The notes: a model not told the origin generated them from the sequence alone. 64,000 nucleotides of DNA from Podarcis melisellensis (GCA_964234715.1 OZ174277.1), one strand, 5' to 3'. Shown: positions 684-61,508, numbered from the stretch's first letter. Program-made: numbers and translations.

Positions 684-1875
684 AGAGTGTGATTGGAGTC
701 ATCTCACTCAGCTGCTTTTCCCATGTCTGAAGACCTCATAGCTAAGAATCCCCTTTACTGCGGAAACCTGGAGTTGCCTAAATGGGTCATTATATATATT
801 ATTATAACTTAAGCAGGTATCATCTAAGCCCTTAAGCCCTCTAGCAGGTGATTATATGTACCGATTATATATATCTATACAATGGATTGCTTTGATGTCC
901 ATTGGCTAACAAGTTGTTATTGATCTTCCCTCCACACCTCACTTTTAATTAATTTTCTTTTTCTCAGGTTGTACTTCCATTCTCTTTGTTGCCTTGGTAT
1001 TTCCCGATACCATCCCTGTTTTCCCCCTGCATCTCTCCACATTGAATATAGCCCGCTTGTTCTTTGCGTGCCTTTGGAGAACAGCGTACCAATGGGGGCA
1101 ATGGCTAGTGTGGTAATGCAGAGCTGCCCTACCGAAACCAGCATCACTGGACTGCGCAGGGTGGTGGCAAGGTTGGAGCTGAGTGGACATGTCCTTACTG
1201 AGCTTCAGGTGTCTGGTCAAAACTGTTTTATTTTCTTAGGCCTTTGCAGCTTGAATGCTTCTCATATATTTTACTACATATTATGCATACTCTTGAGCTG
1301 TGTATGAATGCTTCAACCACATAGACAAGAAAAGTCATGTGAATCTTACCCCACCAAGGGGTGGGGTACAAATTCTGTGGGTAAGGCCCACATTGTTGCA
1401 GCATCACATTTAGCCACCTGCGCTGTGGAATTGCACCACAGAAAAAATTATCCTATGTAGCTGCATGTGAAGTGTATCACTATGATGAGGAAAGCATTCC
1501 TGATTTCAAAGAATCCTGCTCCACTCTGAAGGCACGTCTTCATTTCCTCTTTGATGCTATAGAAAAGCACTTGAACATGGGCATCAAACTGACATAACCG
1601 GTGACTGAAAGGGAGAGTTTCATATCCTCAGACTTAGGTGGCTGGTGGTAGCAGGCCAAATGGCTGTGTGGCAAATATAGCAGACTGTATGGTAGAGCTG
1701 CTAAAGGCTGTGCTCTGGTCAATTTTCTCATACACAGCAGGAAGGGGTGGTGCTGTCCAGGCTGTTTTGCCATTTTTATGTCCCGGATGAAATCTGCTTG
1801 AAGGTGACCCTGGCCACAGATTTTAGCTTTTTCTGCTCTGTCTCTTGATATCAGGACCAGATTCCCCACTTACAG
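684..1875 (+). repeat. Direct segmental duplicate, copy 1 (of 58840-60031)
   Basis: Constant offset of 58156; about 10 substitutions and no indels seen by eye in 1192 bp; ORF track nearly identical. Confidence 0.97.
968..1208 (+). other. Duplicate copy of the candidate alternative exon (ATG 1092)
   Basis: Identical to 59124-59364 except for one T/C upstream of the ATG. Confidence 0.45.
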
Positions 1876-3167: not shown

Positions 3168-3286
3168 GCTGTTGGACAAGCTTGCAGAAATATAAATCAT
3201 CTCGGGCATGAAGAAACTACAGCATGAAGAAACTTATAGTGCTGAATTTGCCTGGCAAATCACCTTTAAAAAGGAAATACGTATTA

Positions 3287-3766
3287 TTGTTGTTGTTGTT
3301 GTTTTTGTTTAGTCGTGTCCGACTCTTTGTGACCCCATGGACCAGAGCACGCCAGGCACTCCTGTCTTCCACTGCCTCCCACAGTTTGGTCAGACTTGTG
3401 TTTGTAGCTCCGAGAACACCATCCAACCATCTCATCCTCTGTCGTCCCCTTCTCCTTGGGCCCTCCATCTTTCCTAACATCAGGGTCTTTCTCAGGGAGT
3501 CTTCTCTTCTCATGAGGTGGCCAAAGTATTGGAGCCTCAGCTTCATGATCTGTCCTTCCAGTGAGCACTCAGGACTAATTTCCTTAAGAATGGATGCGTT
3601 TGATCTTCTTGCAGTCCATGGGACTCTCAAGAGTCTCCTCCAGCACCATAATTCAAAAGCATCAATTCTTCGGCGATCAGCCTTCTTTATGGTCCAGCTC
3701 TCACTATTGTGAAAACCATGGTTTTAACTATACGGACCTTTGTTGGCAAGGTGATATCTCTGCTTT
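3287..3766 (-). mobile_element. RTE-BovB LINE, 3' fragment
   Basis: ORF 3217..3630 RVPWTARRSNASILKEISPECSLEGQIMKLRLQYFGHLMRR; (AAC)n tail. Confidence 0.95.
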
Positions 3767-4599
3767 ATTATTATTATTATTATGAGTATTAGTGCTCTTA
3801 ATAAATATTAAAATGACCGAAATGAAATAGAAGGTTATACAAATGTGAATAAAATTATGTGAAAGCCAGAATAAATAAAAGCATAAAATGAACATAAAAT
3901 TTTGAATCTCCCTGTTACCTGAATTCACCAAGGGGGGCAGGGCGGGGCAGGACAACACTCCTCTCATGAATGAAGCCTGGTGCCACAAACCGTGTCTCAA
4001 ATTGGTACCATACACAATGTCACCCTGTCCCATTAATGCACTGTCCTTTTGTCCCCATACCCAAAGTGTGCCCGTAAAATAAGGGTAGACCGCTTGCAAA
4101 AACTCCTCCATTCATAAAGCTTGTGCTGACTTTCCCATTCATAAAATGCTGGACAATCATTAGACAACATTCAAATACCTTTCAAACTAACAGCCAATCC
4201 AGTCCTCTTATGTTGACAGCTGCTGAACTCCCATCCAATAGGGGTTATGGAACAGCACTCCCTGACTGCAGCCATACTGCAGCTGTCAAACCAGCCTCAA
4301 CTCAGTTCACATAAATGGAAACCACTCCGGGGATAAGGGAAAGTGAGAACAAGCTATCAAGACCCTTTGTTACATTGTATCAACTCCAAAGGTTACATAG
4401 TATCCATTTGTAGAGTTTTGGCTCCTCAGTAACAGAAAACCTGTATAAATTCATATAAAATCACCCCATTAACAGATTTGTTCCATTCCAATGGTGTTCT
4501 CACCAGAAGGACTTTGGCTACTAGAAGAGGAGATTGGGAAAGGGCTGGGGACAGCCATAATCCCTGACGCATGGGGTCAACACAACTGCCTCACTGCTT

Positions 4600-5723: not shown

Positions 5724-5896
5724 NNNNNNNNNNNNNNNNNNNNNNNNNNNNNNNNNNNNNNNNNNNNNNNNNNNNNNNNNNNNNNNNNNNNNNNNNNNNN
5801 NNNNNNNNNNNNNNNNNNNNNNNNNNNNNNNNNNNNNNNNNNNNNNNNNNNNNNNNNNNNNNNNNNNNNNNNNNNNNNNNNNNNNNNNNNNNNNNN
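5724..5896. other. Assembly gap (173 N)
   Basis: Run of N. Confidence 1.
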
Positions 5897-9726: not shown

Positions 9727-12590
9727 TGTATGAGTTGTCTTTTAAAAACACAAATAACACTGAGGAAAATGGCTGCACATGGCATTTACAGAGAATTTAA
9801 ATTTCATACCATTTAGATAGATGCAACATAAGGCTGTTCTAAGTTACAGAAGCTTGTGATTTTTACTTTATAAGAATTATTCTAATTATTGTAGAAATCC
9901 AGGCAATCTGTGCAGTTTGATAGCTCCATATTTGCTGCCTTCTGTAAGCTTGATTATATTTAGGTTAGGCCTGGATTAATACTGGTTTACGGTTACTACT
10001 TACAGCACATTATCATTACAGATCTGTATGTGTAGTTGTGGTAACTAATTAAAGTGCTGCAGATGCTGCTGCCTAAGCCAATTTAAGAACAAAAGCATGA
10101 ATTTCCAGTTACGTGAGCTAGATAATGACAATTCCTTAACATGCTTGTTGCCCTTGAGTTATGTCCTGGTTAGCCGGAGCTGATCTGTGTCTCACTTTTC
10201 CTCAGTGCACATTTCAGCTGTTGGGTAGTCTGAGTTGCCTCTTACTCTTGGTCCTCCCTGCCACAAAGAGTCCTTACTGACAAGCTTCAGGTCATAAGCA
10301 AGTTGCATGTACACGGTGTAATTACTTCCTCCACTTCTTGTCTTACTGTTGTCTTGCTAGAATGTAAGTTTCAGTACTCACAACTGCAAGCTATCTGTAG
10401 CTACAGCATTGATTTCTTTCAAACATTTCTTTCTACTATGAATCATAATTGCTTCTTTGTTCAAGTTTTGAACAGTTCACAGTATTTCAATTAACTGCAA
10501 AATGTTTGTTTTTTAAAAATTGTGTTGAAGTCAGGAAATTATTATTAAGAAAATATCCTATACTATTTTAAGTCTTTGGGTGCCAGTGTTCCTTGTCAAT
10601 GTAATTTTGTCCATGTAATATTTAGAATTTGGTGAGTGCAATCATTCAAACGTGAATGTTAACTTTACCAGACACCTCTTGTGGATGTTGGAAAACTCAG
10701 ATACTTCAGTGAAGCATTTAAATGTGATTGGCAATATTTATTTTAGTATGCCTGAAAGCTGGATAAATAAATATCTATTCTGGGATATCCATAACATCAA
10801 TCTGAAATGTGAATCTTGACAGTCACCAAATTTTGGGTTATTGATATAAAATATATAGGAAAATGTGGATTGGAGCTTTAAATATTAATATACACTAATG
10901 TTAAAAAATGCACAGTCCACCTGAGAAAACCTTTAACTTCACTTCTTAGATTTAGTATGCAGATTTGAATAGTGTCTCCACCCCCACTGGTCCTTTCATA
11001 TAAATTTAAACCTAAATATGTAACATTTCCATTATTCACAGCACTGCTCACTATGCTTTAGATGCACAAACAAATTGTTCATCAAATTCTTTATTACTTG
11101 CCTTGTAGAATACAATTTTATGAATAGGATATAGTTGAGTAATTATAGGAACTATAAGGTTAAAAGGTTGCATTAGTAATTTGTGAAGCATTTCATATCA
11201 CTTCTGCAGTGGTTCTTCCTTTTTTTATTTATTTTGCTGTTACTTTTAAGAAGAGTTGCCTTGGGCAAGGGTTACATACCAGTTGCTCCAGTCTTTCTCC
11301 TCCCCTTTCATTCACAGGAAGTAACTATAACCACCCTTTTCTGTCTTTGTTTTATACAAAGAGAAATCACCCCTTTTCTCACCAGTCCTAACTGTGCGGT
11401 GTCATCTGTCAATAGTGAGTTGGAAATGAAATTGGCATTCAAAGATTACATGGGATCTTGTTTTAATTTCCCAAAAATCTTATGCTGACCATTTCTTTGT
11501 TTTTTATAAGATTATGTGTGCATCAAGAAAACACGAGCACAAAATAATACTTCAGTTATTCCCTGTCCTTTTATTTTATTTTTAAAGTGTAAGTTGTAAT
11601 CAGTTTCACATCTAAATTTCTGAAGAGTTATTCTCCTGGAGAGATCAGGTTTTCTTGGTTGAGCTAGGAAAACTTTAGTTCTCATTCACGACTTGTTTGC
11701 TTCCTACTCCCCAGCAGACTGTGTGGGCTCTATGGTTCTGCAACAAATGCAAAAGTGACATGTTTGAGGGATCTTTGGCAGTTGTGGAGGCTGGGAGTGT
11801 CTGGACAAGTAATTGTTTTGTTTGTTTTGGAGGTATGAATAATGGGAGGTATCAGCAGGTACGTTCTGTAGTCTCCCTGCGGAGACATGTGTCATATTTG
11901 AACCATGGGTGTCCTCCACCCTCTCCCACCAGCTACTCTTACATAGTACTGAGATGAAATAGCATGTGTTTTTTTACAAACCCTTTCGCACACATATCCC
12001 ACAAAACAATTCCCCTCTTTTCTTTAGTCTCTTTCATTCACTTGTGGAACTGTTCAGGAGAAGAAGAAACACATTGTCAATACCAAGGCACCATGCTTCA
12101 TTTGCCTTCACTAGTCATACCTAACTGCGTGACTAGAGTTGGATCAAGGTGTGTCAAATGTTGCTAAGGGCTGCCAAAAAAGGCCTTGGGGGTCACATGC
12201 GCCCCTCAGACTGTGCATTGGACCACCATGGCAAGCATTAGACATACTCCTAATTCATTCTCTCTCTCTTCAAATTCAGAGTTTGCTCTTAGAACAAAGG
12301 CCTGTTTCTCTGCCTCATCCAGATTTTAGAGAAACTGTTCTCCCTGTAATCCTCTAAAAACACAGTAGCTAAGGAACCTGGTCCTTTCTGTCCTCTCTGT
12401 AATTACAGCACTGCTCCCTACACACAAACCTAAGATAGTTGTTGGAAAAATTAATGGAACTGAAGAAGGGAGGAGAATCTTAGATTTACAAATACATTCC
12501 TGCCTGGTCATTTTTTTCCTTAGGTGGCCAAATGACCAATACTTGGCCGGTCTTTTCAGCCTCCTGTAAGAGCCGGTCTATGTAAATAAT

Positions 12591-13101
12591 TGTTGTTGTT
12601 TAGTCGTTTAGTCGTGTCCGACTCTTCGTGACCCCATGGACTCTTCGTGATGCCAGGCACTCCTGTCTTCCACTGCCTCCCGCAGTTTGGTCAGACTCAT
12701 GTTTGTAGCTTCGAGAACACTGTCCAACCATCTCGTCCTCTGTTGTCCCCTTCCCCTTGTGCCCTCCATCTTTCCCAACATCAGGGTCTTTTCCGTCTTT
12801 TCCAGGGAGTCTTCTTTTCTCATGAAGTGGCCAAAGTATTGGAGCCTCAGCTTCACGATCTGTCCTTCCAGTGAGCACTCAGGGCTGATTTCCTTCAGAA
12901 TGGATGCGTTTGATCTTCTTGCAGTCCATGGGACTCTCAAGAGTCTCCTCCAGCACCATAATTCAAAAGCATCAATTCTTCGGCAATCAGCCTTCTTTAT
13001 GGTCCAGCTCTCACTTCCATACATCACTACTGGGAAAACCATAGCTTCTACTATAACGGACCTTTGTTGGCAAGGTGATGTCTCTGCTTTTTAAGATGCT
13101 G
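12591..13101 (-). mobile_element. RTE-BovB LINE, 3' fragment with an 11-bp TSD
   Basis: ORF 12608..13042 MVFPVVMYGSESWTIKKADCRRIDAFELWCWRRLLRVPWTARRSN; TSD atgtaaataat at 12580-12590 and 13102-13112. Confidence 0.96.
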
Positions 13102-26634: not shown

Positions 26635-26816
26635 GAATCTCCTTCTGGACGCCGGAAAGCTCTTGCCACCAGCAATATTAACATGAAGCAATATGCAAGT
26701 CCAATGCCTACACAGACGGATGTCAAGTTAAAATTCAAGCCTCTGTCTAAGAAAGTGATATCTGCCACCCTTCAGTTCTCTTTATCATGTATTTTCCTGA
26801 GGGAAGGGAAAGCAAC
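26635..26816 (+). CDS. EHBP1: EHBP1 coding exon (182 nt), C-terminal half of the NT-C2 domain: ESPSGRRKALATSNINMKQYASPMPTQTDVKLKFKPLSKKVISATLQFSLSCIFLREGKA(T)
   Basis: ttttctttaag| acceptor and AC|gtaagt donor; phase 0 start, phase 2 end; translation nearly identical to vertebrate EHBP1 as I recall it. Confidence 0.97.
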
Positions 26817-50885: not shown

Positions 50886-51063
50886 ATCAAATCCATTTTA
50901 TGAACCAAAATCAAGTTCTGCTTTTAATAGTCAAGTTCCTCCGCCACAAGAAATGGAAAGGAAGAGAAGAAGAAAAGCTCCTGAACCACCAAAGACAGGA
51001 GTGGAAACAAGTGAGAAGAAGTCAGCTATTTGTCCACTGAAGGAACTTTCCTCTTCTCCCAAG
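50886..51063 (+). CDS. EHBP1: EHBP1 coding exon (178 nt) with NPF motif 5: SNPFYEPKSSSAFNSQVPPPQEMERKRRRKAPEPPKTGVETSEKKSAICPLKELSSSPK
   Basis: tttttttttaattag| acceptor and AAG|gtatgg donor; GA+A = Glu joins the previous exon; ends in phase 0. Confidence 0.95.
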
Positions 51064-58839: not shown

Positions 58840-60031
58840 AGAGTGTGATTGGAGTCATCTCACTCAGCTGCTTTCCCCATGTCTGAAGACCTCATAGCTA
58901 AGAATCCCCTTTACTGCGGAAACCTGGAGTTGCCTAAATGGGTCATTATATATATTATTATAACTTAAGCAGGTATCATCTAAGCCCTTAAGCCCTCTAG
59001 CAGGTGATTATATGTACCGATTATATATATCTATACAATGGATTGCTTTGATGTCCATTGGCTAACAAGTTGTTATTGATCTTCCCTCCACACCTCCCTT
59101 TTAATTAATTTTCTTTTTCTCAGGTTGTACTTCCATTCTCTTTGTTGCCTTGGTATTTCCCGATACCATCCCTGTTTTCCCCCTGCATCTCTCCACATCG
59201 AATATAGCCCGCTTGTTCTTTGCGTGCCTTTGGAGAACAGCGTACCAATGGGGGCAATGGCTAGTGTGGTAATGCAGAGCTGCCCTACCGAAACCAGCAT
59301 CACTGGACTGCGCAGGGTGGTGGCAAGGTTGGAGCTGAGTGGACATGTCCTTACTGAGCTTCAGGTGTCTGGTCAAAACTGTTTTATTTTCTTAGGCCTT
59401 TGCAGCTTGAATGCTTCTCATATATTTTACTACATATTATGCATACTCTTGAGCTGTGTATGAATGCTTCAACCACATAGACAAGAAAAGTCATGTGAAT
59501 CTTACCCCACCAAGGGGTGGGGTACAAATTCTGTGGGTAAGGCCCACATTGTTGCAGCATCACATTTAGCCACCTGCGCTGTGGAATTGCACCACAGAAA
59601 AATTTATCCTATGTAGCTGCATGTGAAGTGTATCACTATGATGAGGAAAGCGTTCCTGATTTCAAAGAATCCTGCTCCACTCTGAAGGCACGTCTTCATT
59701 TCCTCTTTGATGCTATAGAAAAGCACTTGAACATGGGCATCAAACTGACATAACTGGTGACTGAAAGGGAGAGTTTCATATTCTCAGACTTAGGTGTCTG
59801 GTGGTAGCAGGCCAAATGGCTGTGTGGCAAATATAGCAGACTGTATGGTAGAGCTGCTAAAGGCTGTGCTCTGGTCAATTTTCTCATACACAGCAGGAAG
59901 GGGTGGTGCTGTCCAGGCTGTTTTGCCATTTTTATGTCCCGTATGAAATCTGCTTGAAGGTGACTCTGGCCACAGATTTTAGCTTTTTCTGCTCTGTCTC
60001 TTGATATCAGGACCAGATTCCCCACTTACAG
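58840..60031 (+). repeat. Direct segmental duplicate, copy 2 (of 684-1875)
   Basis: As for copy 1; this copy lacks the SINE at the right junction. Confidence 0.97.
59124..59364 (+). CDS. Candidate EHBP1 alternative first coding exon (ATG 59248): MGAMASVVMQSCPTETSITGLRRVVARLELSGHVLTELQ
   Basis: Strong acceptor ttttctttttctcag|, CAG|gtgtct phase-0 donor, non-repeat sequence, located in the phase-0 intron before the CH-domain exons; no expression evidence. Confidence 0.5.
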
Positions 60032-60156
60032 ATGGCTGCCTAATTTGGTGGTACTGAATTTAAATTATTATTTTTAAGCTGCTGAAGTCTACATAATTAG
60101 TAGCATTCTCACACAGCTAGTTTGTGGTTGTTATTCTAGTTTACATTAAGTATTTA

Positions 60157-60414
60157 CTGTATTTTTTGCTCTATAAGACTCACTTTTTCCCTCCTAAAAA
60201 GTAAGGGAAGTGTGTGTGCGTCTTATGGAGCGAATGCAGGCTGCGCAGCTATCCCAGAAGCCAGAACAGCAAGAGGGATTGCTGCTTTCGCTGCGCAGCG
60301 ATCCCTCTTGCTGTTCTGGCTTCTGAGATTCAGAATATTTTTTTTCTTGTTTTCCTCCTCCAAAAACTAGGTGCCTCTTGTGGTCTGGTGCGTCTTATAG
60401 AGCGAAAAATACGG
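60157..60414. mobile_element. pogo/Tigger-like MITE with an internal palindrome
   Basis: TA-ctgtattttttgctctataagac...gtcttatagagcgaaaaatacgg-TA. Confidence 0.92.
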
Positions 60415-61508
60415 TATTTTGCATTTTTGTTCCTTGATTCACTTCTTTGGAATAAGATGTATTTCCCCCCTGACAAGAGAAGAAAAAGAAAATGTACATA
60501 TTATTTAAGTCCTCTATCATGCTGAGATGATGGTGGACTTGTGGGGAGGGGGAGAATCCAAACAAAAATGAAAAGTATTCTTTACTTATCTGGGAGCAGT
60601 CCTTGCTGCTGTTGAGCAGCTGCAGCGCTTCTAATATTTTTAGCCATGTCTGATCAGAAGTAAGTGCTACTCAATTCATTAGGGTGTACTCCCAGGTAAA
60701 TGGGGTCAGGATTCCTGCTGGGTAAAATAGGGACAGTTAGCTTCAAGAAGGTAGGCATATTTTTCATGCTTTTCTAACTACACAACAGTTGGTTTACTTG
60801 CAACAGCTTTTTCTGAATGAAGTGATTATGTGTTTAGGAAGAGAATAATATTGTGGAGAAAGAAAAACATGATGATGTTACTAATTACAGAACAGCCTGT
60901 AATGGGGAGGGGAGGAGAAGAAGAATGAATTGTGTCGTACACTGCAGGAAGCAAACAGCAATGGAACAGAAAGAGCCCCTTCTTCAATGAATATGTGTCA
61001 GGGTGGAAACTGACATTTTAGCAAACGGAAGTGTTCTTTTGTTTAGGGATAGTTTGCAAACCCATGCTACAGTTTTGTCTAGCTTATATATTCACTATAT
61101 TCATCCTTAGGACACTATACTTTTGACAAATTAAGATTTACTAACCAAGACCAAAGTCAGACCCTAGAGTCTGATGACGTTGATTAGATATAAGCACATA
61201 ATAACTCTGTGCAGCTTATATTTGGAAATACTAATGCTTACCCTGATACTATTGCAAAATGTTAGGTAGGCTCTGTTGACACCAGCTGAGAACAAATGGT
61301 ACCTACTGTGGATGCAGAGAACCAAGTTATACTGCTTTTAGAGAGCAGTATAAAATAACTTGTCAATCAAAAGCTTAGTGCCCCAGAGTCTACTACTACT
61401 GCTGTTATTATTATTACTACTACTATTATTGTTATATATATATTCAAACTTTTTTCGTGACAGAGACTCAAGGTGCTTTACAGATAAGAGCAGAGAAAAA
61501 TATCAGTG

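Follow-up and report, generated by a model that had tools for sequence, protein, structure and literature searches.

An apparently young, non-coding intronic duplicate with a non-canonical SINE at its right edge in a lacertid EHBP1-family gene

A segment of about 1.2 kb occurs twice in the same orientation, 58 kb apart, within a 64,000-nucleotide stretch of DNA from Podarcis melisellensis (GCA_964234715.1 OZ174277.1; this whole stretch is called the window here), and its presence raises the question of what was duplicated and by what route. A preliminary description of this DNA proposed that the segment is a cassette of promoter and first exon that was shuffled very recently within a gene, where it could give rise to a new protein isoform. 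Our own reading, to which we assign a probability of about 0.5, is that a real, young, non-coding and dispersed duplication in introns of a lacertid EHBP1-family gene had the right edge of one copy set by retrotransposition of a SINE.

Two copies of an intronic segment

Alignment with MAFFT and a blastn comparison of the window with itself both describe a single ungapped direct repeat, in which positions 684-1875 on the + strand (copy A) match positions 58840-60031 on the + strand (copy B) over 1192 bp with 99.16% identity (E = 0). The substitutions, which had been put at about ten by eye, number exactly ten when counted by script, and there are no insertions or deletions. They stand at copy-A positions 719, 941, 1043, 1447, 1496, 1599, 1626, 1641, 1786 and 1809, so that the T previously proposed as diagnostic at 1044 is actually found at 1043. 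Six are transitions and four are transversions, and three fall at CpG sites, with decay of the CpG in copy A twice and in copy B once. This pattern resembles real mutation and not sequencing noise. The differences are somewhat denser toward the right third of the unit, with only three located within its first 763 bp (P = 0.03).

Searches with blastn at a word size of 7 detected no homology between the left flanks of the two copies or between their right flanks, except for 27 nt that are discussed below, and they revealed no third copy of the unit within the 64-kb window. A repeat search, combined with a reading of the ends of both copies, showed that the 1192-bp unit is free of poly(A) and of tandem structure and that its ends carry neither inverted nor direct repeats, long terminal repeats included. 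Target-site duplications (TSDs) are absent at either copy, and an Rfam search gave no match inside the unit. These results uphold the earlier statements that the unit has no terminal inverted repeats, long terminal repeats or poly(A) and that the arrangement is not that of a simple uncollapsed allele, both flanks being unrelated. A simple haplotig can thus be rejected, since the flanks are without a match. Gene conversion of an old duplication was also rejected, because differences are not in excess in the outermost 35 bp at one end of the unit and 66 bp at the other, and it is further contradicted by the absence of diverged homology past 684.

Exons of an EHBP1-family gene of the host, a lacertid lizard, lie along the + strand of the window. 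Judging from the human sequence, this gene is probably EHBP1 rather than EHBP1L1. The exon at 26635-26814 on the + strand, which starts in phase 0 after ...ttctttaag, encodes the end of the NT-C2 domain and matches profile positions 88-140 of the 143 in Pfam PF10358 (E 2.4e-4), a score below the gathering threshold for an exon that is a fragment of the domain. Exons with NPF motifs are located at about 27.1, 31.5, 35.7 and 50.9 kb, and the last coding exon before copy B (50887-51063 on the + strand; NPF...RKAPEPP...) ends in phase 0 before GTATGG. A motif search found neither the upstream NT-C2 exon nor the CH-domain exons within the 64-kb window, and there are no bMERB exons in it. Both copies are intronic and have the same orientation as the gene, because of their positions relative to the EHBP1-family exons and because the upstream NT-C2 and CH exons were not found in the window. 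The earlier placement of copy A upstream of exon 26635, with phase 0 at that exon, likewise agrees with our results: orientation is shared, the phases are compatible, and the phase arithmetic is correct for both copies (at the start of exon 26635 and at the exon end at 51063). Copy A is separated from the EHBP1-family exons by the sole run of Ns in the window (5724-5896, 173 N), which is an assembly gap or a mask, perhaps over a conserved element. As a mask, it would dispel the concern about scaffold order that was raised in the preliminary description.

Several other repeats occur in the window. At 60155-60416, 124 bp to the right of copy B, there is a MITE of about 260 bp. Its terminal inverted repeats are 29 bp long and 90% complementary, and it contains a 35-nt hairpin. 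A repeat with the ORF motif VVPRKTNASQ.EK.ARRKGF occurs in three + strand copies at about 17594, 61523 and 61988, of which the first precedes exon 26635 and the other two lie beyond the right end of copy B.

The two copies differ by K = 0.0084. If neutral rates in vertebrates are assumed to lie around 1e-9 per site and year, the duplicate would be a few million years old. Words of the window are shared with DNA sequencing runs from the same species (two studies) and from five related species. The related species have 0.44-0.56 of the sampled 31-mers, which would correspond to a divergence of about 1.5-2.6% if the differences are evenly spread. Because this value is greater than the 0.4% per lineage that separates the duplicates, the duplicate is predicted to be specific to P. 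melisellensis or its closest relatives.

The putative promoter and first exon

The proposed cassette centers on a putative first exon at 1092-1208 on the + strand (59248-59364 in copy B), where an ATG at 1092 is followed by 39 open codons, MGAMAS...ELQ, and by a potential donor site, CAG/GTGTCT. If this were a working alternative promoter and first exon, a new EHBP1 isoform beginning MGAMAS...ELQ-ESPSGRRK... would be produced that lacks most of the NT-C2 domain. Consistent with this possibility, the ATG, the open codons and the CAG/GT are intact and identical in both copies, with none of the ten substitutions located inside the putative exon, and the phases fit both exon 26635 and the exon following 51063. 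In addition, the longest stretch without a difference between the copies (404 bp) surrounds the ORF, though a stretch of this length is not unusual by chance (P = 0.17).

Nevertheless, a functional exon is highly improbable in our estimation. The frame has no Pfam match, and its configuration is common, as an ATG followed by at least 39 codons and AG/GT occurs eight times on the + strand of the window (two of these being copies A and B) and 13 times on the non-coding - strand. These counts serve as a warning that phase-compatible "exons" composed of ATG, ORF and GT can be expected by chance about ten times per strand per 64 kb of this genome. Moreover, the putative donor departs from the consensus at +4 (A) and at +5 (G), and a C is present at -3 of the ATG. 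The CpG observed/expected ratio of the unit is 0.21 with a GC content of 0.44, compared with window means of 0.34 and 0.41, and the corresponding values for the 408 bp upstream of the ATG at 1092 are 0.37 and 0.41. No CpG island is therefore present in the unit, an outcome that is still compatible with a CpG-poor promoter. Among the listed sequencing runs that share words with the window, none is recorded as RNA.

Further arguments against the exon come from a single database entry. A word search of a protein database with a 109-aa minus-strand ORF of the unit and with a 112-aa ORF yielded no matches, and a full HMMER search among 1.84 billion representatives yielded one match to the unit, P0001 (E 3.8e-10). 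This is a nameless singleton of 224 aa that comes from one 1531-bp Logan contig of a related lizard, and tblastn shows it to be a collinear, unspliced translation of unit positions 882-1559 with 91% identity, which thus reads straight through the putative splice site. In the genome examined here the same frame is interrupted in both copies by four in-frame stops, at 921, 1305, 1458 and 1527. At the codon where the GTG (Val) of the putative donor stands, P0001 has Leu, and because no Leu codon starts with G, there can be no GT at this position in the species of P0001. There is also more change inside the putative exon, with six of its 39 residues altered, than outside it, where 15-16 of 187 are altered (Fisher P = 0.22-0.23), and hence there is no sign of purifying selection on the exon.

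The 224 codons that are open in the relative make P0001 an unusually long accidental ORF. Its length is best explained by chance together with a selection bias of the database, in which it is present because it is long. P0001 also offers an outside reference for the two copies. The substitution at 1447 is the only difference between copies A and B that alters the P0001 frame, and since P0001 agrees with the state of copy B (position 59603), the state in copy A is the derived one.

Given the lack of a family match, of a CpG island and of a donor GT in P0001, and given how often comparable configurations arise, the description of the unit as a promoter-plus-exon cassette is not sustained, and we judge the MGAMAS...ELQ frame to be a chance ORF in intron sequence. 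Our findings point to an intronic duplicate that would be neutral.

The right edge of copy A

Directly adjoining the last base of the unit in copy A, 1875, is the tail of a SINE. This element (1876-2250) is a full-length, minus-strand, tRNA-derived SINE of the Sauria type, and it aligns over its full length with four other copies in the window at 79-94% identity. Its tail, GGTAAAGGTAAAGG, begins at 1875/1876 and consists of short repeats of the TTTACC type (GGTAAA on the + strand), as do the tails of the other copies. The ORFs of the SINE have matches of SINE origin among the annotated ORFs of Podarcis lilfordi and P. muralis, and for the ORF beside copy A there were 12 matching proteins. A 94-aa ORF that spans 1875-2130 has other SINE copies as its only matches, at 77% or less. 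An insert divides the element into a tail half (1876-2087, - strand) and a head half (2120-2250, - strand), the latter carrying the tRNA-like sequence and being complete to the 5' terminus.

By sequence this SINE is a member of its family, and its insertion is non-canonical. Three other copies, at about 14.3, 19.6 and 58.3 kb, are flanked by clear TSDs of 9-12 bp that end in ...TA before the tail. No TSD follows the head of the SINE at 1876-2250, which was tested against both candidate left flanks, namely the end of the unit and the left flank of locus A. Its divergence from a leave-one-out consensus, built from the four other copies in the window, is 7.8%, or 5.1% when CpG sites are set aside. 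This consensus is poor because only five copies are available in all. The closest copy in the window is 94% identical and has several otherwise "private" variants in common with it, which suggests a SINE subfamily.

The family is presumably mobilized by a LINE of the Bov-B/RTE type. Two fragments at 3220-3770 and 12590-13093 are 88% identical to each other and contain minus-strand ORFs, which we take to resemble the C-terminus of the reverse transcriptase of a Bov-B/RTE-type LINE, and these fragments likely represent the partner of the SINE family. At 84-118 there is an 18-bp tandem duplication (GCCACCTGCGTCCCTGTA, 1.9 copies, 100% match), whose position coincides precisely with the 5' terminus of another minus-strand SINE that runs off the start of the window. 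On the other side of the SINE that borders copy A, a palindrome at 2255-2364 starts 4 bp past the SINE head and has 55-nt arms that are 95% complementary with a 0-nt spacer. Several Rfam miRNA-hairpin families were reported for this hairpin, all with scores below thresholds. Its arms contain three mismatches, more than expected at the age of the duplication (P = 0.012), and the palindrome is probably an older hairpin repeat or fold-back.

The insert inside the SINE is informative about the history of the junction. It is 32 nt long (2088-2119, + strand), and its first 27 nt (2088-2114) match positions 60038-60064 on the + strand with one mismatch (blastn E 7.6e-6 in the self search of the whole window), a stretch that starts 6 bp past copy B. 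Its remaining 5 nt, CTGGA, are a repetition of positions 2103-2107. On either side of the insert stands one member of an 8-bp duplication of SINE sequence, TTTCAAAC (2080-2087) and TTTCGAAC (2120-2127), and point errors and a small deletion cluster beside the switch point at 2087. Scored relative to the other SINE copies in the window, these amount to two substitutions and the loss of 6 bp, all no more than about 25 bp from 2087. The insert is absent from the four other SINE copies in the window and from nine SINE-derived ORFs of other loci in the database. It is thus not a feature of a subfamily, since these nine ORFs lack it.

The right flank of copy B is intact and continuous. Copy B is missing exactly those parts that derive from the SINE, and it has kept the non-SINE sequence by which the SINE tail half is bordered to its left and right in copy A. 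Therefore, the order of unit, 6 bp and 27-mer is ancestral, and the SINE sequence was gained in copy A. Derivation of copy B from copy A was rejected, as an exact loss of the SINE-derived parts alone is not credible. The 27 nt of flank preserved in the insert further imply that copy A once reached at least the equivalent of position 60064, so that the original duplicate was at least 1225 bp long. Judged from this arrangement, the present right edge at 1875 is secondary and appears to have been set by a template-switching event that involved the SINE. What was copied was thus not a cassette with fixed borders. Exon shuffling, as put forward in the preliminary description, accordingly finds no support, the putative exon being without conservation of coding or splice features.

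The same structure bears on two other explanations for the presence of two copies. One is that copy A is an assembly artefact, in which a piece was mis-joined or misplaced, or an allele of locus B was stitched into foreign flanks. The divergence of 0.84% is within the range of allelic variation, the run of Ns is only 3.8 kb away, and another individual with the same species label has 0.67 of the sampled words, as against 0.89 in the best sample. However, neither flank is related to locus B, the four junctions offer no repeat or common k-mer by which an assembler might be led astray, and microhomology does not exceed 3 nt. The run of Ns may also be a mask and not a gap. The 27-nt copy of flank with its mismatch, the 8-bp duplication and the 5-nt slip are the signature of a polymerase and not of an assembler, and the six transitions, four transversions and three CpG sites are unaccompanied by indels in homopolymers. 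An artefact is thus unlikely.

The other explanation is that the unit is an unrecognized mobile element, or part of one, that was inserted independently at both loci, as might be supposed from the sharp left end common to both copies, their near identity and their unrelated flanks. We consider this very unlikely. Terminal repeats, poly(A) and TSDs are absent, the 64 kb contain no third copy, and the two loci differ in their right ends, as copy A was formerly at least 33 bp longer. Also, the ORFs of the unit were without a match in the word search and recovered only a singleton in the full search, whereas an ORF of a true mobile element, the adjacent SINE, matched 12 proteins.

Origin of the junctions

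We put at roughly even odds a scenario in which the junctions of copy A were produced by retrotransposition. At least 1225 bp of intron DNA with the copy B arrangement (unit, 6 bp, 27-mer) would have been placed 58 kb upstream. A LINE endonuclease would have nicked the + strand right after the last base of the unit (...CTTACAG^ATGGCT...), and SINE RNA would have been reverse-transcribed from the nicked end, either at the new copy or within one joint event. The polymerase may then have departed from the SINE RNA in the middle of the element and copied 27 nt of the target's own flank, beginning 6 nt past the nick, before a backward slip of 11 nt and a return to the SINE at a TTT microhomology, 8 nt behind the point of departure. 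Finally, the completed end would have been ligated to unrelated DNA rather than to the reciprocal end, with loss of the downstream flank. Both the lack of a TSD and the lack of the downstream flank would be due to this joining of the finished end to unrelated DNA. In a two-step version the event struck a longer duplicate that already existed, and in a one-step version the event itself made the duplicate. The order of events and the templating of the SINE at copy A by RNA are what we infer here. The outcome would resemble a retrotransposition-associated deletion or rearrangement, as in the insertion-associated deletions described for retrotransposons, and breakpoint micro-insertions templated from nearby sequence have been described as well (PMC4229983).

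Some observations run counter to retrotransposition. With its divergence of 7.8%, the SINE looks older than a duplication with 0.84%, unless its source gene belonged to a divergent subfamily, and the argument from SINE age is weak because there are only five copies. Canonical tails (n=3) start after ...TA, and the tail of the SINE beside copy A starts after ...CAG, whereas the left flank of locus A ends in ...CTAA, which would itself be a canonical priming site. At the left junction (683/684) there is no microhomology except a possible AG, which also counts against our preferred explanation. The structure of copy A and both of its junctions are known from one assembly.

In a rival explanation the duplication is again real and non-coding, and was made by serial switching between DNA templates (FoSTeS/MMBIR or repair of the polymerase-theta type) at a locus A that already contained the SINE. 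Synthesis would have left locus A after ...GGGCTAA(AG), copied 58840-60031 of locus B, and returned to locus A at the exact point of departure. It would then have continued through 212 bp of the resident SINE, copied locus B again for 27 nt from a position 6 nt further on, slipped, and resumed on locus A 8 nt back. Such a path advances almost collinearly on both templates (offsets of 0 and then -8 on A, and of +6 on B), and it has AG on both sides of the 1192-bp insertion and TTT at the last switch. With the unit removed, locus A reads ...CTAA/AGGTAAAGG, which is like the canonical SINE junctions ...TA/AAAGGTAAAGG, and the SINE at 1876-2250 is about as diverged as the old copies and looks no younger. 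Moreover, micro-insertions with nearby templates and errors at breakpoints are described for replication-based rearrangements (PMC4229983). However, a resident SINE would be expected to keep its TSD of 9-12 bp, and none is seen, even though the TSD persists in three other SINE copies, one of which is 15% diverged. Four switches between loci 58 kb apart would also be required. We regard this path as a real possibility, if a tentative one.

Returning to retrotransposition, it is conceivable that everything took place in one event. The nick would have been made after 60031 at locus B, the SINE would have been reverse-transcribed there with a brief switch of template, and the strand would have been captured 58 kb upstream, a course that we consider doubtful. 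Equally doubtful is the corollary that the extended strand, consisting of 1.2 kb of host DNA and the new SINE, was displaced or re-replicated and that locus B was repaired intact. If true, a SINE would here have brought about a "primer-side transduction" in the germ line and at the level of DNA, by which promoters or exons beside an insertion site could be moved without the usual marks of 3' transduction.

Comparison with known systems

The locus belongs to a known kind of event, in which a non-LTR retroelement and a templated insertion mark the breakpoint of a small dispersed duplication. Its value is that of a well-preserved natural breakpoint, in which a copy of 27 nt reveals both the greater length of the former duplicate and the switching of a polymerase between SINE and host flank.

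In LINE 3' transduction and in exon shuffling of the Pack type, as here, a fragment of host DNA with an ORF and a donor-like site comes to lie at a new intronic place beside a mobile element. Unlike in these processes, the fragment at our locus adjoins the SINE where priming took place, at the 3' tail, poly(A), a TSD and terminal inverted repeats are all missing from it, and the "exon" is without the signs of an exon. Transduction by read-through from the SINE was itself rejected: the SINE sense strand carries runs of T4 and T6 about 310 and about 430 nt into the unit, where Pol III would terminate, and there is neither a TSD around 684-2250 nor a tail at the left end.

FoSTeS/MMBIR is usually described for larger copy-number changes. 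The likeness to our locus consists in the alternation of short and long pieces from two templates in collinear order, with microhomologies of 0-3 nt, and also in the small duplication at the point of return and in the point errors and small deletion near the switch. The difference is that one of the templates here is a SINE, for which RNA-templated synthesis is an equally good reading.

Rearrangements associated with L1, Alu and SVA insertions include cases in which reverse-transcribed ends are joined to distal DNA and in which insertions are templated near the integration site (PMC4229983; PMC11702581). At our locus, similarly, a non-LTR element stands exactly at the breakpoint with its 3' tail on the priming side, there is no TSD, the downstream target is lost, and a short piece is copied from adjacent DNA. 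In contrast to those cases, the element is a Sauria-type SINE in the germ line of a lizard, the templated piece is in the middle of the element rather than at its 5' junction, and across the breakpoint from the element stands a 1.2-kb duplicate from 58 kb away. Comparable outcomes are known from human L1, Alu and SVA elements and from cancer genomes. Fixed germ-line cases outside mammals help to show that retrotransposition-associated rearrangements also shape the genomes of squamates, through their Bov-B and SINE systems.
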